A stretch of DNA of 64,000 nt. It comes from Caecitellus pseudoparvulus (Eukaryota > Protista > Bigyra: Bicosoecida). How positions within the stretch are numbered: the stretch's first letter is position 1; each line of letters opens with the position of its first letter. Shown here in pieces: positions 54,463-64,000 of the stretch. The notes beneath the pieces were generated by a model. The model was not told where the DNA came from and searched no databases. It saw only the letters and a list, made by a program, of their open reading frames with translations. The translations under genes were made by a program, and so were the position numbers. Location: NCBI GenBank assembly GCA_965644315.1, contig CBFFRQ010000043.1, forward strand, positions 186,001 through 250,000, written 5' to 3'.

Positions 54463-55518
54463 ATGCTGTCAACTGTACGCGGTCGAGTTTTGCTGTGCGC
54501 GCGGGCAGCAGCAGGGCACGCTGCTTTGCCGCCTCAGCATGTCACAGCATGGACGGCACGCACCGCTCTTACGGTGCAGCAAGTCAAGGTTTACCCAAGA
54601 CCTGAAACCTTCCCCCAGTTTCAAGTGTCTTTAGGAGGTGGTAGCCCGTCTGTGCTGTACACGACAGGTGCCGAGGCAGAGACGGCTCTGGAGTCACAAC
54701 TGAAATCCATGAACGCAAAAGGATCAGCACTAGTCCAAAGTCTGAGGGAATGCCATAAGGACCCTGAAGTCGTCCTCTGTGTTGCACAAGCTGTTGCTTC
54801 CTGCAAGGTAAGCTTTGCGTTGCCCGCTGGAGTAGCGGGAAAACTCAAATGCCTCGTGTGGTGTGCAGATTCCGAATTCCGCAACTATACGCGCCCTTCT
54901 CCACCCGACAATAGTGGCCACTGCTCATAATGCTTTCAAGAAATCCAGCAGCTCTGGTAGTGCTCTGGATCACCTGCGTGCGTTTATCGTGGGAAACGCA
55001 GAACTTCCACCGCAAGTGTTGCAAGACTTGCTCCATCTGGGTGGTCCACGAGAGTTCGGCGTTTTAATGAAGACAAATGAACTAGAGTTCTTCATGGTCC
55101 AACTTCGCAAGGAGTTGGAAAATCAAGTCCAAGTCGAGGCTCTGGAGCGCGAGGTGGAAACCATGAAAAAGCAAGTGGCTCATCACCTTGACGAAGCATT
55201 GAAGCCGCTCAGTGCAGAGTACCAGACTCGTGTCAAGAGAGCGCTTTCGGCGTTGCGGGACGACGCATTTGACGAGGTAGCTGTCCTGACAGCAGAAGCA
55301 GCGCTGTGTCGAGCAAAGGTGAGTGTGCTTCCTGCATCGCAAGGGCTACCTTGCTCCACGCACCCTGCTTGCCGCAACCGCGCCTCCATGCTCTTACGCT
55401 ATGCAGAAGAGAGTCAATGGAGGGTCTGCTATAGCTGTGCTCAAGCCCAGTGTGCTCCACGAGCTGCATGCATTGTTGGGCGCGCCAGCAGGTTCTCTCA
55501 TGGCAGTGGAGCAGCATG
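54463..55518 (+). pseudogene. Repeat-module paralogue B, interrupted in exon 3 by the transposon; exons 54463-54807, 54869-55318, 55407-55518
   Basis: Same exon layout as paralogue A (exon 1 115 vs 116 aa, both ending AVA..K|GTAA); exon 2 ends RVKRALSALRDDAFDEVAVLTAEAALCRAK; exon 3 SAIAVLKPSVLHELHALLGAPAGSLMAVEQH matches A exon 4 SALAVLRPSVLHKLQGLAGSPASSLVAAKQH and stops at the TIR. Confidence 0.78.
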
Positions 55519-55520
55519 CC

Positions 55521-55534
55521 GTCATGAGATTTTC
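55521..55534 (+). repeat. Left terminal inverted repeat
   Basis: GTCATGAGATTTTC; extends to CCGTCATGAGATTTTC (from 55519) at 14/16 identity with the right end. Confidence 0.78.
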
Positions 55535-55666
55535 GGGGGGGGGGCGACATGCCTTTTGGGGGGTTGCCCTCGAAGGGGTATAGGGGTGTGGGGCAAACTC
55601 CTTTTTGTGGGGGTGGGGCAGACACCCACTTTGGGGGGGGGGTGGTGCAAACACCCTCTTTGGGGG
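55535..55666 (+). repeat. Subterminal G-rich degenerate direct repeats (~25-30 bp x 3-4)
   Basis: GGGGTGTGGGGCAAACTCCTTTTTG, GGGGGTGGGGCAGACACCCACTTTG, GGGGGTGGTGCAAACACCCTCTTTG, plus a weaker copy starting at 55535. Confidence 0.65.
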
Positions 55667-57333
55667 TACCCAGGCGAACTGCTGGCAGGCTGTGCATTGC
55701 AGGCAGGGGGCGGGGGGGGGGGTCTACGGCACCTTGCAGCTCGCGCTGGCCATCAAACTGTCACCAGGCGGTGTTGCGCACTGCAATGCATGCCCTGCGT
55801 CCACGGCACCCGCCTCGGAGCACTCACGCCTCAGGCCACGTGCCTTTGCCGCCGCCCGCCTCTGCCGCCGCGCACCTCTCAGTCCGCCAAGCTCTGTGGG
55901 GAGCCTCTCCAAGTCATTCAGGGTGGTACACCAGTTATTCTGCAGCATCGCGTACCGGAAGGCCTGCGCAGGTGGGGGGAGGAGGCTCGCGTGGCTCTGT
56001 ACCTTGACACCAGCAGTCACGTCGTAGCCGCTCCCTGCACAAGGCACCAGCGCAGCAGCCCCTCGCACTCACCCCATTTTGGCTGGCGCCGTGGTGGGAC
56101 TTGCCCCTCATGATCAGGCCGTCGGGTCTTCCATTCCTGTGAAGGGGCGGCAGTGGCTCGGGTGATGGTGTGGGAGTGCCAGGCACCGGCTGCAACGCCA
56201 GGCATGGGGACGAGCGCATGACGGCCACGCACCGCTCAGGCCATCCCAGTACAGTATGCGGCATTCAGGGAGATACTTGGATCATCCAAGTGGGCCCTGC
56301 GAATGGCCAGAGGGGTGGTGTGTGTGCGTCGCGGGTGAGGGAGTTCGCCTGCGCAGAGGGGTGGCGTTGGAGGCAGGCAGCACCAGCGCCCGGCGCATGC
56401 AGTCCCACCCACCCACACAAGAAACTGCCGCGCTTTCAATAGGTACCGACAAACATCATGTCAATGGTGTCTTTTCTGCGGCGCTGGGGCTGGCACGAGT
56501 GTGCGGGGGTGCCTTGGAACATGACACGGCGTTTCGCGCAAACGCCGCGCATAGGCGGGTGCTACCCCTGTCCCAACGCACCGCTGAAGCCATCCATGGA
56601 GCACAGTCCGCGATGCAACAAGGTCAAGTTTCTCGAAAGGGCATGCTCTGGCAGGGGGAGCTCGGGTAGGGGGGCGCCTGCACGCAGAGGGGTCTGTGTG
56701 TGACTCGGCTTTGCAACGCCAATGCTGAACCCGCGTGCTAGGCCCCTGCACGAACCTGCAGCCTGCGATGGCGTCTGCAGGCCATGAGGTGTACAGCTCT
56801 TCACGACACTATCCGGCTCACTGCGCAGGAGAGGGCGACAGGCGGGAGCGGAGGAGGTGACATGTCCCATGCCGTTGCAGGCGAAACGCCCGGCACGCAA
56901 GCTGTGCGCCGCTCACTTCTGTGTACTCGTGCAGCGACAGGCAGGCCGAGGCTAAGGCCATGTGCAAACGTACGCTACCATGGGGACTTGACTTGCACCG
57001 TTCAGATTTGCGCTGGGATCAGAAAGTGTCCCTATGCGGACGGGGGGGGGGGGGGTGGGTTCTTCTGATGCTGGTCCGTTGCTTCCTTGTCACACGGGCG
57101 AAGGGCCAGGCGGGGTGCGCTTCCAGTGGTGTGGCGGTTGCATGGGCCACAGGGGTGCAGCTGTTCCTCAGCGCCAAGCTGGGGGTGTTGCACGCAAGCG
57201 AACGCTGGCACGCCGGAATAGCTTGCATTGCGCTGACGGGCGTGCGGTGGGGATATGAGTGGCTGCGATGTCACCAGCCTCAGAGCAGGCATACGCACAC
57301 GACATGGATGCCCTGTACCGAGGGTACTTATCA

Positions 57334-59407
57334 TCATTCCAACGACATGTTTCTCGGGGGCGTTGCGTCGCCGCGCGGGCGCTTTGTGCCGCGGGACCTT
57401 CCGCATCCCAGCACCGCCCCGCCGTCTCCGAGCACACCGGAAGCTTCGGCACCAGGCTCATGCTCAGACTCGGAACCTGAACCCGAGCCTGAATCCGATC
57501 CCTGGCCCGGGCAGGGGCCCAGCTCGGCACTGCCGTCAGTGCTGACCACGGGGTGCTGCGCAAGCGCTTGCTCGGCACGTGCGTGGGCCAGCTTCGAACG
57601 CTCACGGGCATCCCTCACAAGTGTAGCGCGGAAGGCCCGGGTGACGAAGCCCCATGTGGAGGCGCTGGCCTCCTCCCCGCGCAAGAAGGTCCACAATGGC
57701 CCGAGCACGGCGCCGATAGTGTACAGCTGGGCGGCGGAGAGCTTGTGCCACTGGCACGTGTAAGGGAACGGCGGTGTGCTGCGTGCAAAGCTGTACGCTT
57801 GGTCGCGCATCGTGTCCACCAGATGCACCGCAGCTTCATACAGCGCCCCCAGTGCCGCCGCTGTGACGACGTCCTGGCGCCTCACGGACACACCCGCGTC
57901 CTTGGCGAGCCCCCTGCGCAACTCCTGCTCCAAGGAGGCTGCCACGAGCGTGGCGCAGTCAAACGGGGCGTCCGGTGTGGCAAAGTCGCGCACCGCGGCA
58001 AAGCGCGCAGTTTGCCTGCGGCGCACCTCCTCCATCGAGAGCACGTTGCGCCCTCGATCCGCCCAAGTCAGGTAGCGCAGAGCATCCTGGGCAGCTTGCC
58101 CCGTGCCGTCCAAGCGCGAGCTGATGTCAAGGAATGCGTCGTGGGCCGGCTGCTTTCTGTGTCGCGTGCAGACCAGGACCTCCGCCTCCCTGGCGGGGCA
58201 CAGCACAGACACTGCCTCCATAAAGGCTTCGTTCTTGGACAGTGCGCTGGGTTGGAAGAGCCGCGACACTGCATCGCGCAGCTTCTTGCACGCCTCGCGC
58301 ACCTGCCCGGGGTCTGCCTGTCGCATCAGGTCTTTGGCGTCGTCCCAGGGATCAGCGCCATCTGCCAGCTGGATTGACAGCGCCTGTTCCAGTGCGTTGG
58401 GCATGCCGTGCATGAAGGCCAGAGGGAAGTCTAGCTCCGGCGTTTCAAGGTCGGCGTCCGCTATCAGCGTTTCGTAGACATCGTCAGGGGAGCCAAGTGG
58501 CCCTTCCGGTACCCGGAGGGCTGCGTTGGTGCACATGAGTGTGAGAGTAGTCGGCGGCACCCCCCACCCCGACCCTGCCTTTAATTGTGCAAACGTCCAC
58601 GAACCCTGTCCAGGGAGCCTCTGCCTGCCGATGGCGTCCATGTGATTGGACATGGACAGACGGCTGTACTGGACACTCGGAGAATTCCGACTGGACTTGC
58701 CGTTCTTGTCAAGTGTGCCCTGCAGCTCCCTGATCTGAGCTTGCATCTGGGCCCTCTCCTTCACACTGTACAGGTACAACACGTACAGTTGGTAGATCAG
58801 GGCCCGATCCAACGCCAAGCTCGCCTGTGCCGCCATCACCCTGTCGGATAGGCTTGGAGCCTCGAGGGCTGCCGCGTTGGGAACGCGGGGCAGGACGGCC
58901 GCGGCAAGGAAGCTCCTGGCCTCTCCACTGGAGTGGTCTGCTGCGGAAAGGGGGCATAGATCGCGTGTAAACTCAGGCGGTGTTGCGTTGAAGCCGCACG
59001 CCTCGACACGGGCAAAGGCTGGTGGGAACGCCATCCTAGTCTCGCGTTGGTATGTCACGCACCACCACCACCGGGCATGTCCAATTCATGCGGCGGCTTA
59101 GCAAGCTGGCCCAGCACTTCTGCGCGAAGGAACTCTTCTGCGGCGCGGGCAAGGACTGGGCGGTAAGCACTGGTGCTTTTGTGCGCGCGTGGTGGGGAAG
59201 CGTTTCACAGCGCAGCACACCATTTGCGCCGCTGGCGCCCGCCAACCACTCCTTGCGCTCCGGGATGGGCAAGGGCTTGCCCTTTTCAAAGGCAATCCTT
59301 TGAAGATGCGCATGCACGCCCTGGAACGCTCGCTTTGCAGAGTCATGCTCGGCGGCGGTGGCTTGAGGCACTGAGCTCGTGCTGACTTCGCTGCGTTGCT
59401 GAGCCAT
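57334..59407 (-). CDS. Transposon-borne protein of unknown function, ~628 aa; probable exons 59407-59221, 59155-59063, 58940-57334
   Basis: Long ORF 57334..59058 plus two phase-1 introns (GTGTGC..CAG 65 nt; GTGCGT..CAG 122 nt) linking to ATG 59407; helical, short coiled coil, Ser/Gly/acidic tail and KRPR motif. Confidence 0.65.
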
Positions 59408-59808
59408 GGTGTCTGGGTGGGGAGACGGGTGCTTGAGAGCTGAAGGTGGCCGAGAAGAGCAAGTGACTAACAGAGGGGGGGGGGGACTGGAATGTGCCTT
59501 TGCGCCTTGCTGGCTTACAGAGCAGCGTGAGGCACCCCCCCTCCCCCCTTGCACCCCCCTCTCAAGGGAAAACGCAGCAAGCTTCCTTGTATCCCTCGCG
59601 TTCCAGGCTTACAGGGGGACTTTTCACAAACGCTAGGGATCGAATGCACATCAACCACTAGCGCAGGTGTGCTTCTTGCCGCCGCGGTGGTGTTGGTTGC
59701 GTTGTGAAGTCCGGATTGGTGTGCCCCCTAGGCACGTTTCAGATACTGAAACGCAACTCGAGCTCTCCCTCCGGACCAGGCCCTGCCAAGCAGCATCCCA
59801 CACCCACG

Positions 59809-62800
59809 ATGTTCACGTGCACTGTGTGCAAGCGGACGTTCTCAACCCAATCAGGCTTGACCCGTCACTTTCAGAGGCAGTGCCAACAGGTGACCCACGC
59901 CAGAAGGAGAAAGCGTAGGCGCGAATTTGAGGCCAAGTTTGCGAAGCACTCTGAGGACGGGGGCAGCCCTGCGCCCGGCATCTGGGAGGATGTCTACGAG
60001 CATACACTTGCTTCACATCGGAAGCACCCGCGTGGGGACGCTGGGGCTGCGCAAGCACCTGTCCAGGAGGAGGCAGACAGCGAGAACTATGAGACCGAGG
60101 AAAGCGAGAGTGATGGGGCGGACGAGTTCGGGGCCGACGCCACGGAGACCCTGCCTGCTGGGCTTGCGGCCAGCGGGGGAGACGCTCAGGCGGGAGAGGC
60201 AGCGGGAGAGGCAGGCGAGCCGGCTGCTCTACCAGCCGACACTCACTCAGCCACTGAGGTGCTGCGGGCACGCGTGGGCTTGCTCTCGGAAGAGCTGGAG
60301 ACACTGAGGAAGAGGAACTCTGAGCTGGAGGCGATACTGACCACCGATGCGAGTGCCGCCTCGGTGTTCAAAGTGCAGCACGATCTCTGGTCGAAGTGCA
60401 TGGCAGACACAGCCAGCTGCAGCACTTGTCAGGCGAAGGTTCGAGCACGGAAGCCGATGCAGCCCCAGAGGAAGATGAAGCGCTTGGTCGAGACACTCAA
60501 GGGGTTGCCTGGCATCTGCATGCCGGGGGTGGTGCACGCCAATATGCCCGCCGGCGTGTGCGACCGGCGTGGAGTGCCACGTGCCACCTGGCCCATCCAC
60601 GGCGTGAAGCTGAAGGATTGGCTTGTCCACTCGCTGGCTCGGATACCTGTTGAGTGCTTGCCCGCCCGTCGGGCCACAAGGGGCGTCCCAGACCCCATGC
60701 ACACGTCGGGAATTGACACGCCCATGGGGACTGCGCTGGCGAGCAAGCTCGAGGCCGCCTTCGCAGACTGCGACGCGGTTGCGCGTGCAGCATTCCAAAG
60801 GCACCGGCCTGGGTTGAGCGACGACGAAACCCCCGCCTTGGCCGCTCCGTTCACGAAGCATGGCCGCTTTCAGGCACACACGATGGCAGGCGCCCAGGAA
60901 CCCCAAGACGGCACCGTGTCGTGTTTCGCTGAAAGCCCGTGTGCTCATGCGGCGTCACAGACAGCTCTGCAACACCGCGCCCTGCCGTTTGTCATCAACG
61001 TCTTCATGGACGAGGCTCACCCTTTCCGCCAACCGAAGACGGCCATCACGCCCCTGAGCGTCCGGCCCATGCAAGTTAGTGCCCGAGAGGCCCGAAGCCT
61101 GGGGTCAGCGGCAGTCCTTGCCTTCATGCCGCTGAAAGACATGGACTTCAAGGGGACCGCGGAGGAGGCGAAACGCGCCAAGTACAAGGCACACCAGGCC
61201 CAGCTCCGCGCTGTGCTGCTGGAGCCTCTTGCTGAGATCCACGCTCAGGGTGGCCTGTGGATCCCGGTAGCAGCCGACCAAGTCGGCGCTCTGCGGGACC
61301 TTGGCGTCGACGTCCTTGAGCCGGGGGCGGGGGTCGATGGGCCTTCGTTCGTTGCCCGTGTGTGGCCGCTCATCGGCGCCATCTGCGCCGACACGGCTGA
61401 GAGATGGATGCTACTCAATGCCGTTCACGGAAGACCCCCACGGTGCTCGTGCGCGCTGGCGTGGCGCAGCAAAGGCCAGCAAGAGCTGGCCGACGCCGTG
61501 CCCCTCGACATGGCCGAGACCGTGGCAGCGCTGGGGACTTGCACGCGGCGCTCGGCGTCCTTCCACGCCGACGCGCTGCGTGACGTGGCGTCTGCCGATC
61601 CGGTCGTGAAGGCGCGGGCGGAGGCCGACCTTGCCACGATCAGGTGGAAGGACGTCGAGGATATCTGCGACATTGAGCGCCATGCGACGCTGTTTGTGGG
61701 GGGCAATGGCTACGAGGCCTGCCCTGCAGACAGGCTGCATGTGCTGGGGAGCGGGGTGGTGGGGGACCGGACATGGGGTGCTTTGGAGCAGGGGATGCTC
61801 GCGCCTGGCCTCGGGGCGCAGGACGATCGCCAAGCGACCTTCATGCACCGCATGCAGCAGCCGCGTCCGCGCCGCATCGACGGCGTACAGGTTGTCGGCG
61901 CGGGGCGGGAGACGGCGGTCAAGCTGTCGGCCGGCAACGCCGTCACAGCAGAGGACAAGCTGGGGCTCACTCGGTGGCAGACGCTGATGATGGGCACGGA
62001 CGACGCCGTCGTGGGGCCGCCCAAGGTCCGCCAACTGCTGAACGCACTGCATGGGGCCGTGGGCGTGGTCCTGCGCTTCACGTACGGCAGGGCAGTGGCT
62101 GGGCGGGGTGACGCGTGCCGTCTGGCCCAGTGGATGGCCCGTGTGGCCACCGTGTTCCAGCTCGTCAGCAACGAGCTGCGCTCCCTTGGCCGGAAGGCTC
62201 TACCCCTCACGTATCCCAAGCTGCACATTGCGCTGCAGCTGGCGCTGGACATGCATTGGTACGGTAGCCTGGAGGCGGTGGATACCGACCACGGCGAGAC
62301 CATGCACACTCGAATCAACCGTGTGCTACGTACAGTGCACCGCGGGAAGCAGGGTGTCCTCTACAAGCTGGCGGAGAGAGTGTGCCTCGTGCAGGCCATG
62401 AGCTGCGCGCCGTACTGTCCACCGCCAGGCTACACTCCCTCCCCCGAGACCTGGTACAACCTATTGCATTCTCGCTCCCTGGTCGCCGGCGACTGTGCCG
62501 GGGCTGCTGCTGACCCAGGCGCTGAGGTGCCACTGAACTTGGTGGGCACGGCCATGCGGCCGATCGTGACGCGATTCAGGAGCGCTGATGAGCCACTGAC
62601 CTTCCCGCAGTCCTTCGTCGCAGGGGCGAGCGCCCTGGCGTGGTTGAGGGAGCGGCGGGTGGGGCCTTCGGGCAGGTTGTACAGGGTGCAACTAAAGCCT
62701 GACGACGTCGTGGATGGACAGGAAGCGGGACACCGCCCCCCCCTCACGCTCTGCACAGGCGTGAGGCTGCGGTACCCCTCTGGCAACACCAACTGGCTGC

Positions 62801-63183
62801 CATTGCCGGGGCCAGCCGACGTCATGTGCATCATCCACTGGGACGGCAAGCGGTTCATGGAGCGGACACTGGTGGACGTAGCCGTGGCCCTGGCGCCGCT
62901 GAGGGACGATGCACGCAGTTACCTGCCCGATGAGACCCTCCTCTTGTGTCGTCACCTGAAGCTGGGCCCTTCTGAGGTGCAGGGGTGGGCACGGGTAAAC
63001 CACTCGCCGGAGGACGAGGCGCAACCGTGGGTGCTGGTGACGGGGGGTGTGGTGGCTGGCCCGGCCGTTGTGCACGAAGCGCCTTGGATCGTGAAGGGCA
63101 CGCCAGGGGAAGCTTCTTACCGCTTCCACTGGGCGCTGCAGGGCCCCGTCGGCAAGCAGCGCAGCGCCAGCGAGGACGCGTGA
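59809..63183 (+). CDS. Plavaka-family transposase with N-terminal zinc finger, 1124 aa
   Basis: FTCTVCKRTFSTQSGLTRHFQRQC zinc finger; PFVINVFMDEA, AVLAFMP, HQAQLRAVLLEPL, PLIGAICADTAE, PADRLHVLGSGV, PKLH...YGSLEAVDTDHGETMH follow the Plavaka motif order (D..D..DxxH..E). Confidence 0.82.
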   Translation: MFTCTVCKRTFSTQSGLTRHFQRQCQQVTHARRRKRRREFEAKFAKHSEDGGSPAPGIWEDVYEHTLASHRKHPRGDAGAAQAPVQEEADSENYETEESESDGADEFGADATETLPAGLAASGGDAQAGEAAGEAGEPAALPADTHSATEVLRARVGLLSEELETLRKRNSELEAILTTDASAASVFKVQHDLWSKCMADTASCSTCQAKVRARKPMQPQRKMKRLVETLKGLPGICMPGVVHANMPAGVCDRRGVPRATWPIHGVKLKDWLVHSLARIPVECLPARRATRGVPDPMHTSGIDTPMGTALASKLEAAFADCDAVARAAFQRHRPGLSDDETPALAAPFTKHGRFQAHTMAGAQEPQDGTVSCFAESPCAHAASQTALQHRALPFVINVFMDEAHPFRQPKTAITPLSVRPMQVSAREARSLGSAAVLAFMPLKDMDFKGTAEEAKRAKYKAHQAQLRAVLLEPLAEIHAQGGLWIPVAADQVGALRDLGVDVLEPGAGVDGPSFVARVWPLIGAICADTAERWMLLNAVHGRPPRCSCALAWRSKGQQELADAVPLDMAETVAALGTCTRRSASFHADALRDVASADPVVKARAEADLATIRWKDVEDICDIERHATLFVGGNGYEACPADRLHVLGSGVVGDRTWGALEQGMLAPGLGAQDDRQATFMHRMQQPRPRRIDGVQVVGAGRETAVKLSAGNAVTAEDKLGLTRWQTLMMGTDDAVVGPPKVRQLLNALHGAVGVVLRFTYGRAVAGRGDACRLAQWMARVATVFQLVSNELRSLGRKALPLTYPKLHIALQLALDMHWYGSLEAVDTDHGETMHTRINRVLRTVHRGKQGVLYKLAERVCLVQAMSCAPYCPPPGYTPSPETWYNLLHSRSLVAGDCAGAAADPGAEVPLNLVGTAMRPIVTRFRSADEPLTFPQSFVAGASALAWLRERRVGPSGRLYRVQLKPDDVVDGQEAGHRPPLTLCTGVRLRYPSGNTNWLPLPGPADVMCIIHWDGKRFMERTLVDVAVALAPLRDDARSYLPDETLLLCRHLKLGPSEVQGWARVNHSPEDEAQPWVLVTGGVVAGPAVVHEAPWIVKGTPGEASYRFHWALQGPVGKQRSASEDA

Positions 63184-63744
63184 GACGGCTTCGCCACCCA
63201 GCCCAAGGCAGCCCAAGACAGCCCGTCAAGGGGGGTGCTGCATCGGACAAATGAATCGTGCATGGCGCTTAAAATGCAATGCAAAGGCGGTAAATCGCCT
63301 TCATATGCGCCAGCGCTGCGGTGCAAGGGAGTTGGCGCAGGCACTTTGCCGCCCGGCTGTGGAGGCGGAAATTGGCGCCCAAAATGGCCCACTTTGCGGC
63401 GTTCTCCTGCGCTATGCAAGGCGAACCATCACGCGCGAGTGCAATAATCTGAATCTAAGCATGAAACTTAGCCCCCTCTGTGACTTTCGCCAGAACGACC
63501 AGAAAATTTGATCAGTCTGCCTCCCTCGGCCCCCGACCCTGCCCTCCGTCGCCACCACGCCAATCCACCCCTTCCCATTGCGCGGCCCGCCGCGGCTCCC
63601 GCAGCGTGAAACGAGTTTGACACAAAGTACACATGAAATAGTGTCATTTTGACTTTTTCCAACTTCTGACGCGCCCGGGAAGGTGTGCCCACCCCCCCCG
63701 CACACGGGAACGAAGTGGTGTTGGAGGGGTGTACGGGGGGGACA

Positions 63745-63758
63745 GAAAATCTCTTGAC
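63745..63758 (-). repeat. Right terminal inverted repeat
   Basis: GAAAATCTCTTGAC; reverse complement GTCAAGAGATTTTC. Confidence 0.78.
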
Positions 63759-63803
63759 TGAAGCATGGAATTGCACTCTTGGTCCTTCTTGCTGACTCCA
63801 CAG

Positions 63804-64000
63804 ATTGCATATTTCTTTGTCAAGGCCATTGAAAGCCTTGGAAGCAGTGGCAAAGGGGTCTTGCTGACCGCACCAGAGGGTGCTGGCGTCTCAACATCGC
63901 TGCGTGCGCTGGAGGCTCTTGTTTGCATTGCTGGACATGGTGATGTGCTGTACTTGGACGACGCAAGTGTCCTTGCGCCGACCGCAAACAAGGAGGATCT
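63804..64000 (+). CDS. Partial exon with degenerate P-loop NTPase start; runs off the window
   Basis: Follows CTGAC..CCACAG acceptor; open frame IAYFFVKAIESLGSSGKGVLLTAPEGAGVSTSLRALEALVCIAGHGDVLYLDD. Confidence 0.45.
   Translation, partial: MAYFFVKAIESLGSSGKGVLLTAPEGAGVSTSLRALEALVCIAGHGDVLYLDDASVLAPTANKED

Follow-up and report, generated by a model that had tools for sequence, protein, structure and literature searches.

Most members of the CACTA/Mirage/Chapaev-Transib (CMCT) clade of DNA transposons have 5'-CA..TG-3' termini. In En/Spm of maize, a CACTA element, the transposase TnpD and the protein TnpA, which binds subterminal repeats, are both produced from one alternatively spliced unit, and the CACTA termini are accompanied by a 3-bp target-site duplication (TSD). 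Plavaka elements, which were named from fungi, encode transposases that are recognisably similar to those of EnSpm and fall with them into one clade (PMC12730594), and some work treats Plavaka as a lineage inside EnSpm (10.1101/2025.02.11.637652). Here, we describe a Plavaka-like element in a stretch of 64,000 nucleotides of Caecitellus pseudoparvulus DNA (contig CBFFRQ010000043.1, positions 186,001 to 250,000 of the forward strand), the whole of which is referred to as the window.

In 2025, Kojima described PlavakaA, with a 2-bp TSD and TGT..ACA termini, and PlavakaB of Agaricomycotina, with a TSD of 2-3 bp and CATCA..TGATG termini (PMC12730594). Plavaka elements with accessory genes dominate the genome of the red alga Bostrychia (10.1101/2025.02.11.637652), an EnSpm-Plavaka family of Auxenochlorella is described as potentially active and as having polymorphic insertions (10.1101/2025.02.07.637104), and further elements are reported in green and streptophyte algae and across Archaeplastida (10.1101/2025.02.07.637104; PMC13519894), as well as in the ichthyosporean Amoebidium (10.1101/2024.01.08.574619). 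An earlier note on this DNA had called Plavaka transposases described mainly from fungi and had suggested that the element might reveal how the ends of a little-known lineage are built; the algal and ichthyosporean cases have overtaken the former statement, and the published termini and TSDs of fungal Plavaka the latter. Among the titles and abstract openings listed for papers naming Plavaka, no stramenopile case is apparent.

The last 8.5 kb of the window contain an 8,242-bp element (55519-63760), which is very probably a cut-and-paste DNA transposon of full length, probably autonomous, that represents a divergent Plavaka-like branch of the CMCT clade and has moved very recently in a GC-rich, stramenopile-like protist. 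Among named organisms, the closest counterparts of the cytosolic HSP90 of this genome are those of oomycetes and diatoms, at 73-75% identity, and 99% identity is reached only with a protein from an ENA metagenome. Its completeness as a two-gene element with definable ends, already proposed in the earlier note, is established by other copies that share its limits and by an empty site that fixes its ends. The principal parts of the element are as follows.

55519 to 63760, plus strand (oriented by the transposase gene): whole element, with the same limits in five other copies
55519 to 55534, plus strand: left terminal inverted repeat (TIR), CCGTCATGAGATTTTC; other copies carry CCGTCGTGAGATTTTC
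63745 to 63760, minus strand: right TIR, CAGTCAAGAGATTTTC read inward (GAAAATCTCTTGACTG on the plus strand), a 14/16 match to the left TIR
59809 to 63183, plus strand: transposase gene, 1124 aa, with ATG at 59809, stop at 63181-63183 and no intron needed
57334 to 59058, minus strand: main exon of the second gene, ORF2, 574 codons plus stop, first ATG at 59034, head-to-head with the transposase gene
59059 to 59808, no strand: stretch separating the two head-to-head genes, presumed to act as a bidirectional promoter and perhaps holding an upstream ORF2 exon

Set beside the known Plavaka elements, this is the same kind of element, new in its clade, its CMGTCA termini and its accessory gene. As in Plavaka (PF18759; PlavakaA and PlavakaB), the transposase is homologous at the profile level with an aligned DDE triad, the TIRs are short, an accessory gene, frequent in Plavaka, is present, and the 2-bp TSD of the other copies, although not of the window copy, agrees with the 2 bp of PlavakaA and the 2-3 bp of PlavakaB. 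In contrast to PlavakaA and PlavakaB, the termini read CCGTCA and CAGTCA instead of TGT or CATCA; a CxC pair replaces the C(2)C of Plavaka, and Gln takes the place of the second His in H(3)H. The element further differs from fungal Plavaka in that its single transposase sequence stays below the Pfam cut-off and falls into a separate clade of an unrooted tree, its accessory gene is an orphan rather than TET/JBP, and its host is a stramenopile-like protist. With the Bostrychia and Auxenochlorella elements it shares a Plavaka-type transposase outside fungi, and with the red-algal elements also the possession of accessory genes, one of which is of unknown function there (PAG1). By their descriptions, however, the giant red-algal elements stand apart, with 17-19 kb and three accessory genes against 8.2 kb and one here, and, in the same comparison by description, this element lacks their methylase, SET and 2OG-oxygenase domains.

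Copies, ends and target-site duplications

A DNA search of the source genome (30.6 Mb, GC-rich), using both ends and their flanks, recovered five near-identical copies, one each on contigs C161, C40 and C12 (the last cut by the contig end) and two in direct orientation on C18 (C18a and C18b), together with more diverged or truncated relatives on C170, C31, C111, C94, C89, C133 and C138. Homology to the five near-identical copies begins at base 213-220 of the left-end query, corresponding to window 55519, and stops at base 553-561 of the right-end query, corresponding to window 63760, and when the junctions were read, the first and last element bases proved the same in every copy. The ends, 5'-CCGTC[A/G]TGAGATTTTC ... 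GAAAATCTCTTGACTG-3', are base-identical in at least five other near-identical copies of the same genome. The 14/16 match obtained by extending the inverted termini to 55519 and 63760 was confirmed in the sequence, and an end-to-end comparison found no alignment between the left and right ends beyond this 16-bp inverted repeat.

The degenerate 16-mer CMGTCRWGAGATTTTC, with at most one mismatch, has two matches in the window against 0.00 expected from shuffles, and across the 30.6-Mb genome the TIR 16-mer has 24 matches, most of them at mapped element ends, against 0 for a reversed control. The termini, CCGTCA...TGACTG, are unlike CACTA, as had been remarked before, and do not show the CACTA/CAC..GTG end type of EnSpm. 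Read inward, the right end begins with CAG (...CTG-3') and the left end with CCG; the C111 subfamily has CAG at both ends.

All of the other full copies (4/4) carry a 2-bp TSD, with flanking dinucleotides, in element orientation, of GG/GG at C161, TT/TT at C18a, CA/CA at C18b and TG/TG at C40. A 2-bp TSD is also found in relatives, namely the 8,306-bp element of the C111 subfamily (CA/CA) and the C30 family (CC). The C161 copy interrupts a transposase gene that belongs to another Plavaka-like family (~34% identical; locus C161:3142-14350), and uninterrupted copies of that host family on C147 (99% identical) and C68 (96%) represent empty sites. Between the empty site TTGGGCCCGAGCCCC and the occupied site TTGGGCCC-element-CCGAGCCCC, exactly two bases are duplicated and nothing else is gained or lost (core GGGCCCGAGCC against GGGCCC-element-CCGAGCC). 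This uninterrupted paralogous site therefore defines the element ends at single-base resolution and, for the C161 copy, proves a TSD of 2 bp. Two of the checks advised in the earlier note, BLASTN of the two ends against the genome and a search for empty sites, thus bore out its description, with copies that end at the same bases, a TIR motif that recurs at copy ends and a 2-bp TSD.

Among the four other full-length copies, pairwise identity is 99.85-99.94%, against 99.0% between them and the window copy. They reflect a very recent burst, relative to which the window copy stems from a slightly older branch or a sister branch. Neither ORF is disrupted in the window, C18a, C18b and C12 copies. 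The distinct TSDs and the empty site argue against segmental duplication of the copies, and the near-identity of the copies, their shared ends and differing TSDs, the empty site and the intact genes together speak for recent activity, as expected of the autonomous-looking, fairly young element that had been proposed. None of the outcomes named beforehand as contradicting that proposal (other end positions, a 14-mer that does not recur, or no Plavaka or RNase H-fold match) was encountered. The assembly contains no alternative allele of the window site, and a metagenome scan with the left flank, made in search of an empty site, returned 0 matches. A single 24-nt metagenome match to the right terminus, in an unrelated low-GC contig, was judged to be chance.

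On C18 (167095-184074), 470 bp separate the two full copies, which run in the same direction and carry TSDs of their own (TT, CA); this reflects either local hopping or a preferred target region. The transposase of the C161 copy itself carries a frameshift near aa 1080.

The transposase and its relatives

The intact ORF of 1124 aa on the plus strand at 59809-63183 was confirmed as originally read, and several older families of this transposase, 23-35% identical to it, are present in the genome. In an alignment of seven in-genome transposase paralogues (A1), M1, C4, C7, H20, D401, D528, C546, C548, C578, D641, H644, K804, H806 and E830 are invariant, and the following features can be placed on the protein.

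59812 to 59874, plus strand: C2H2-type zinc finger (aa 2-22), Pfam zf-C2H2 at E 2.5e-4, below cut-off, with C4, C7 and H20 invariant in A1
60901 to 62397, plus strand: DDE catalytic core (aa 365-863), located by hhalign, motif columns, AlphaFold2 and fold matches
61009 to 61011, 61390 to 61392 and 62296 to 62298, plus strand: catalytic triad, D401, D528 and E830, respectively
Further motifs of the core: CxC pair C546/C548, C578, D641/H644 and the YPKxH motif (H806)

A word-indexed search of 5.8 billion proteins with the transposase returned only the protein itself. At the profile level, a hidden Markov model (HMM) of A1 gave 22 matches at E <=0.001 among 1.84 billion representative proteins, and six of the ten A1-profile matches scanned against Pfam pass the Plavaka cut-off, for example those of Clavulina (269 bits) and Sporobolomyces (103 bits). 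When A1 was aligned by hhalign to A3, the set of Plavaka-positive proteins retrieved by the A1 profile, the probability was 99.9% and E 7.9e-32 over 439 columns, with D401, D528 and E830 aligning to the Plavaka D, D and E.

The AlphaFold2 model of aa 340-900 (pLDDT 72.2, pTM 0.74) leads to the same clade. In a Foldseek search of the PDB, the top 45 matches are all RAG1, BbRAGL (amphioxus RAG-like) or Transib, with a probability of 1.00 for RAG1 and BbRAGL at a TM of ~0.42. VIA-align against 48,161 representatives ranked RAG1 highest (Z 14.8 over 358 residues, rmsd 4.7), followed by BbRAGL (13.8), the P-element transposase (11.4) and Transib (9.4), with the next match at 7.5. The predicted catalytic core fold is thus RAG1-like, as the literature predicts for the CMCT clade, and RAG1, Transib and ProtoRAG (BbRAGL) are its best structural matches in kind. 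Unlike these systems, the element has no RAG2-like partner, its termini differ, sequence identity is only ~10-12%, and its TSD measures 2 bp instead of the 5 bp of Transib and RAG. Profile and fold matches together uphold the relationship to CACTA/Mirage/Chapaev transposases stated in the earlier note, with Plavaka as the nearest family within the CMCT clade.

In a maximum-likelihood tree of the core, the families of this genome and three database proteins (two from ENA/Logan assemblies and one from an NCBI genome assembly) form a clade with support 97/96, apart from the Pfam-positive set with the fungal proteins. The tree is unrooted, and the clade may lie inside Plavaka or beside it.

An identical transposase lies on contigs of two ENA metagenome assemblies. 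The entries L027 and L028 (ENA ERZ17175005 and ERZ27290035) hold the same 1159-aa ORF in DNA 99% identical to the element; the ERZ17175005 and ERZ27290035 contigs have a variant right terminus, CAGTCGAGAGATCTTC read inward, and differ over ~30 bp of subterminal sequence.

The second gene and the weighing of alternative readings

ORF2 was searched as its long exon (574 codons) rather than as the spliced 628-aa model of the earlier note, of which the divergent minus-strand ORF of 574 codons stands and the upstream exon or exons stay unverified, the interval 59119-59419 showing no codon periodicity. A long helix is predicted in the N-terminal part of the protein, and aa ~330-500 form a conserved C-terminal domain; an acidic linker rich in Ser and Gly and a basic KRPR tail are further features. 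ORF2 is intact in five other copies, at 97% amino-acid identity, and accompanies the transposase in two more subfamilies, at 50% (C111) and 37% identity (C50/C169), with substitutions in its conserved C-terminal part biased to the third codon position. This conservation and the third-position bias mark ORF2 as a real, selected gene. Between the window and C18a copies, synonymous and non-synonymous codon differences number 7 and 14 in ORF2 and 13 and 8 in the transposase, and ORF2 accordingly appears to evolve faster.

No Pfam match to ORF2 was found at E up to 10, no PDB match in a profile search, and no ESM Atlas match with either the whole protein or aa 285-505; Pfam and the PDB profile search revealed no 2OG-oxygenase, methylase, SET or other enzymatic domain. 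A profile word search retrieved only four relatives, which are near-identical or without names, one being labelled Symbiodinium sp. KB8. The KB8 contig (GCA_905221625.1, 2,231 bp, 66% GC) is a rearranged relative of the element in which the 3' part of the transposase gene (89% nucleotide identity) is joined to ORF2 (71%), which suggests that a relative of this protist, or its DNA, is present in the KB8 assembly.

Comparison with the C111 subfamily bears on what ORF2 may do. At the nucleotide level, the transposase region of the window element is 94% identical to that of C111 and ORF2 69%, and the aligned blocks do not reach the outermost ~170 bp at the left end or ~80 bp at the right end, the left-terminal 150 bp being 56% identical. 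Because ORF2 and the termini have both diverged while the transposase region has remained 94% identical, ORF2 co-varies with the ends, and for this reason we prefer to see in it a TnpA-like end-binding specificity factor. A set of candidate sites for such binding lies next to the left TIR, and a loosely similar stretch adjoins the right one.

55534 to 55666, plus strand: left subterminal G-rich repeats, four GGGGGTGGGGCAGACACCCACTTTGGGGG-like units, candidate protein-binding sites
63680 to 63744, minus strand: right subterminal G/C-rich stretch, GGGGGGGGTGGGCACACC read inward, with loose look-alikes of the left unit (weak resemblance)

On the left, a repeat search delimited four copies of a ~29-nt G-rich unit at 72-90% identity, as the subterminal repeats of the earlier note would require, whereas on the right only the looser G/C-rich look-alikes were present, so that the claim is borne out in part.

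These observations can be combined into a working mechanism. The transposase, with its N-terminal C2H2 zinc finger and RAG1-like DDE core (D401, D528, E830), would recognise the 16-bp imperfect inverted termini (5'-CMGTCRWGAGATTTTC), excise the element and reinsert it with a 2-bp staggered cut. ORF2 would be transcribed divergently from the shared intergenic region and encode an accessory factor specific to the element, which would most likely be TnpA-like and bind the G-rich subterminal repeats, or would otherwise act against silencing.

Several observations weigh against an autonomous, Plavaka-like element with a cofactor gene. The single transposase sequence scores 15.9 bits against Pfam Plavaka (PF18759; E 0.0076), over aa 512-578 only, where the gathering cut-off is 26.3; for the C111 subfamily the score is 16.5 bits, and five families of the genome that are further removed give no match. 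The Pfam check proposed for 59809-63183 thus stays below the cut-off, and it is because of the profile-level homology (hhalign 99.9%), not of the single-sequence score, that we call the element Plavaka-like. In addition, the second His of YPKxH(3)H is Gln810 (window 62236-62238) in the window family and the C111 subfamily, whereas the five more distant families keep His; the enzyme may therefore not be fully competent in catalysis, and a sister family could conceivably mobilise the element in trans. The window copy has no TSD (TG against AA), and two degenerate relatives, on C170 and C94, are without matching flanks. As to ORF2, it has no detectable homologue of known function, its AlphaFold2 model from a five-sequence alignment is unusable (pLDDT 36.5), its co-variation with the ends comes from a single subfamily comparison, and the second ORF of the C30/C141 family has no similarity to it.

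We consider it very improbable that the element is an ordinary EnSpm/CACTA transposon with the classical TnpD and TnpA pair as its two genes. The one clade formed by Plavaka and EnSpm transposases (PMC12730594) and the placement of Plavaka inside EnSpm in some papers (10.1101/2025.02.11.637652) would allow such a classification. The layout of a transposase plus an accessory gene, with subterminal repeats, resembles that of En/Spm, which belongs to the same broad clade. However, the termini CCGTCA...TGACTG are neither CACTA nor CAC..GTG, the TSD is 2 bp and not 3 bp, the genes are divergent, and ORF2 is without similarity to TnpA. Moreover, Plavaka is the only transposase family that Pfam scans with E limits of 0.01-0.1 listed, with none of EnSpm type among the matches, and every identifiable external match of the A1 profile is Plavaka-positive. 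For ORF2, a role other than that of a transposition cofactor, as a captured or de novo passenger that counters host silencing or otherwise helps the element, is unlikely but has more to recommend it. Known accessory genes of Plavaka elements are related to chromatin or DNA modification or are of unknown function (PMC12730594; 10.1101/2025.02.11.637652), and analogues of such a passenger exist in TET/JBP of fungal Plavaka, PAG1-3 of red-algal Plavaka and VANC of VANDAL. The excess of non-synonymous differences in ORF2, its 50% and 37% identity where the transposases are 97% (aa 117-1124) and 69-80% identical, and the KRPR tail, read as a likely nuclear-localisation signal, fit a passenger as well. 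On the other hand, no enzymatic domain is detectable, and the divergence of ORF2 tracks the terminal regions of the element, which suits end recognition better.

A separate question is how the window copy itself came to lie where it does, given the two dinucleotides that adjoin it.

55517 to 55518, no strand: left flank dinucleotide TG, differing from the right flank
63761 to 63762, no strand: right flank dinucleotide AA, differing from the left flank

Host sequence adjoins the left terminus, as the earlier note had described: the left flank is unique in a DNA search of the genome, and both flanks (55318-55518 and 63761-64000) are ~80% identical to a paralogous host gene at C95:180000-182000. 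In this paralogue, the points homologous to the two flanks are separated by ~690 bp that are unique in the genome and absent at the window locus; their uniqueness rules out that they are another transposon. The missing TSD, together with the ~690 bp missing relative to the paralogue, leads us to infer a secondary event at this copy, which would then have arisen not as a primary insertion but through recombination or deletion involving two neighbouring copies, or through an aberrant insertion that removed ~690 bp of host DNA. This account, to which we give slightly less than even weight, draws on the mismatch of TG and AA where every other full copy has a perfect 2-bp TSD, on the alignment of the paralogue to both flanks, and on the C18 direct pair, 470 bp apart, which is the substrate that such recombination needs. 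Against it, the paralogue is only ~80% identical, so that an unrelated indel is possible, the window flanks could simply have mutated, and the left-flank alignment to C95 is short and comes from a permissive local alignment, BLAST having missed that segment and given only other, weak left-flank matches.

Returning to the reading of the element as a Plavaka-like transposon with a TnpA-like cofactor, a wider proposal can be attached to it, although we regard it as speculative and rather doubtful. The families of this genome and a few proteins from metagenome, sequencing-run and genome assemblies would constitute an undescribed sister lineage of Plavaka in the RAG1-related CMCT clade; it would occur in heterotrophic stramenopiles only and still be active, and in it the fast-evolving ORF2 and not the transposase would set the ends that are mobilised, with subfamilies diversifying by swapping ORF2 and termini round a near-unchanged transposase.

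The finding leaves the understanding of this class of elements as it was; it adds a stramenopile-like protist to the hosts of the Plavaka-like branch within the RAG1-related clade, with base-exact ends, a proven TSD and copies young enough for experiments. Several diverged sister families coexist in one 30.6-Mb genome with common CMGTCA-type termini and a head-to-head second gene, a natural series in which the joint evolution of end recognition and accessory proteins of CACTA/RAG-type systems can be studied. Since both genes are invisible to Pfam, annotation would otherwise list such elements as host "hypothetical proteins"; one copy lies within a host gene.

Sister families, non-coding features and nested insertions

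The C30/C141 family, whose transposase is 33% identical to that of the window element, has a length of 7,817 bp, CCGTCAC...GTGACGG termini, a TSD of CC and a head-to-head second ORF of 482 aa. Its TIR pair is the only one backed by a second copy in a blind TIR-pair scan of the sister families, which is noisy in GC-rich DNA. At C150:28499-28582, an 84-bp miniature element consists of just both termini of the C111 subfamily, and it also occurs at C81:24858 and C115:17703; because the three copies share identical flanks, they lie inside a larger repeat and do not represent three insertions.

Between the left subterminal repeats and ORF2, and downstream of both genes, three further features of the window element can be listed.

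55688 to 57082, no strand: internal 1.4-kb block, 77% identical to the C111 subfamily (blastn), without coding signature
57224 to 57229, minus strand: AATGCA hexamer ~110 nt downstream of the ORF2 stop, candidate poly(A) signal
63273 to 63283, plus strand: tandem AATGCAATGCA (AATGCA) ~90 nt past the transposase stop, candidate poly(A) signal

The internal block is kept better between the window element and the C111 subfamily (77%) than ORF2 is (69%). Its mismatches are spread evenly over the three codon phases, gaps are few, and all six frames match equally; a third gene is ruled out by this lack of codon periodicity and equal conservation of the frames, and the block is probably cis-acting or regulatory DNA or a non-coding RNA.

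The C40 copy is itself interrupted by an 18,144-bp insertion (C40:153363-171506), which splits the transposase gene at ~aa 952 and has TIRs of 415 bp (99.76% identical) and a 5-bp TSD (CGGGT). An rve integrase carrying a chromodomain and a DUF5906 primase/helicase-like protein are encoded in this insertion, which looks like a Polinton/Maverick- or virophage-like integrated element. The same copy sits in a tandem array (143576-146219 and 172613-173248) with self-matches offset by ~300 bp, relatives of which are found on many contigs, including C210, C30, C38 and C67.

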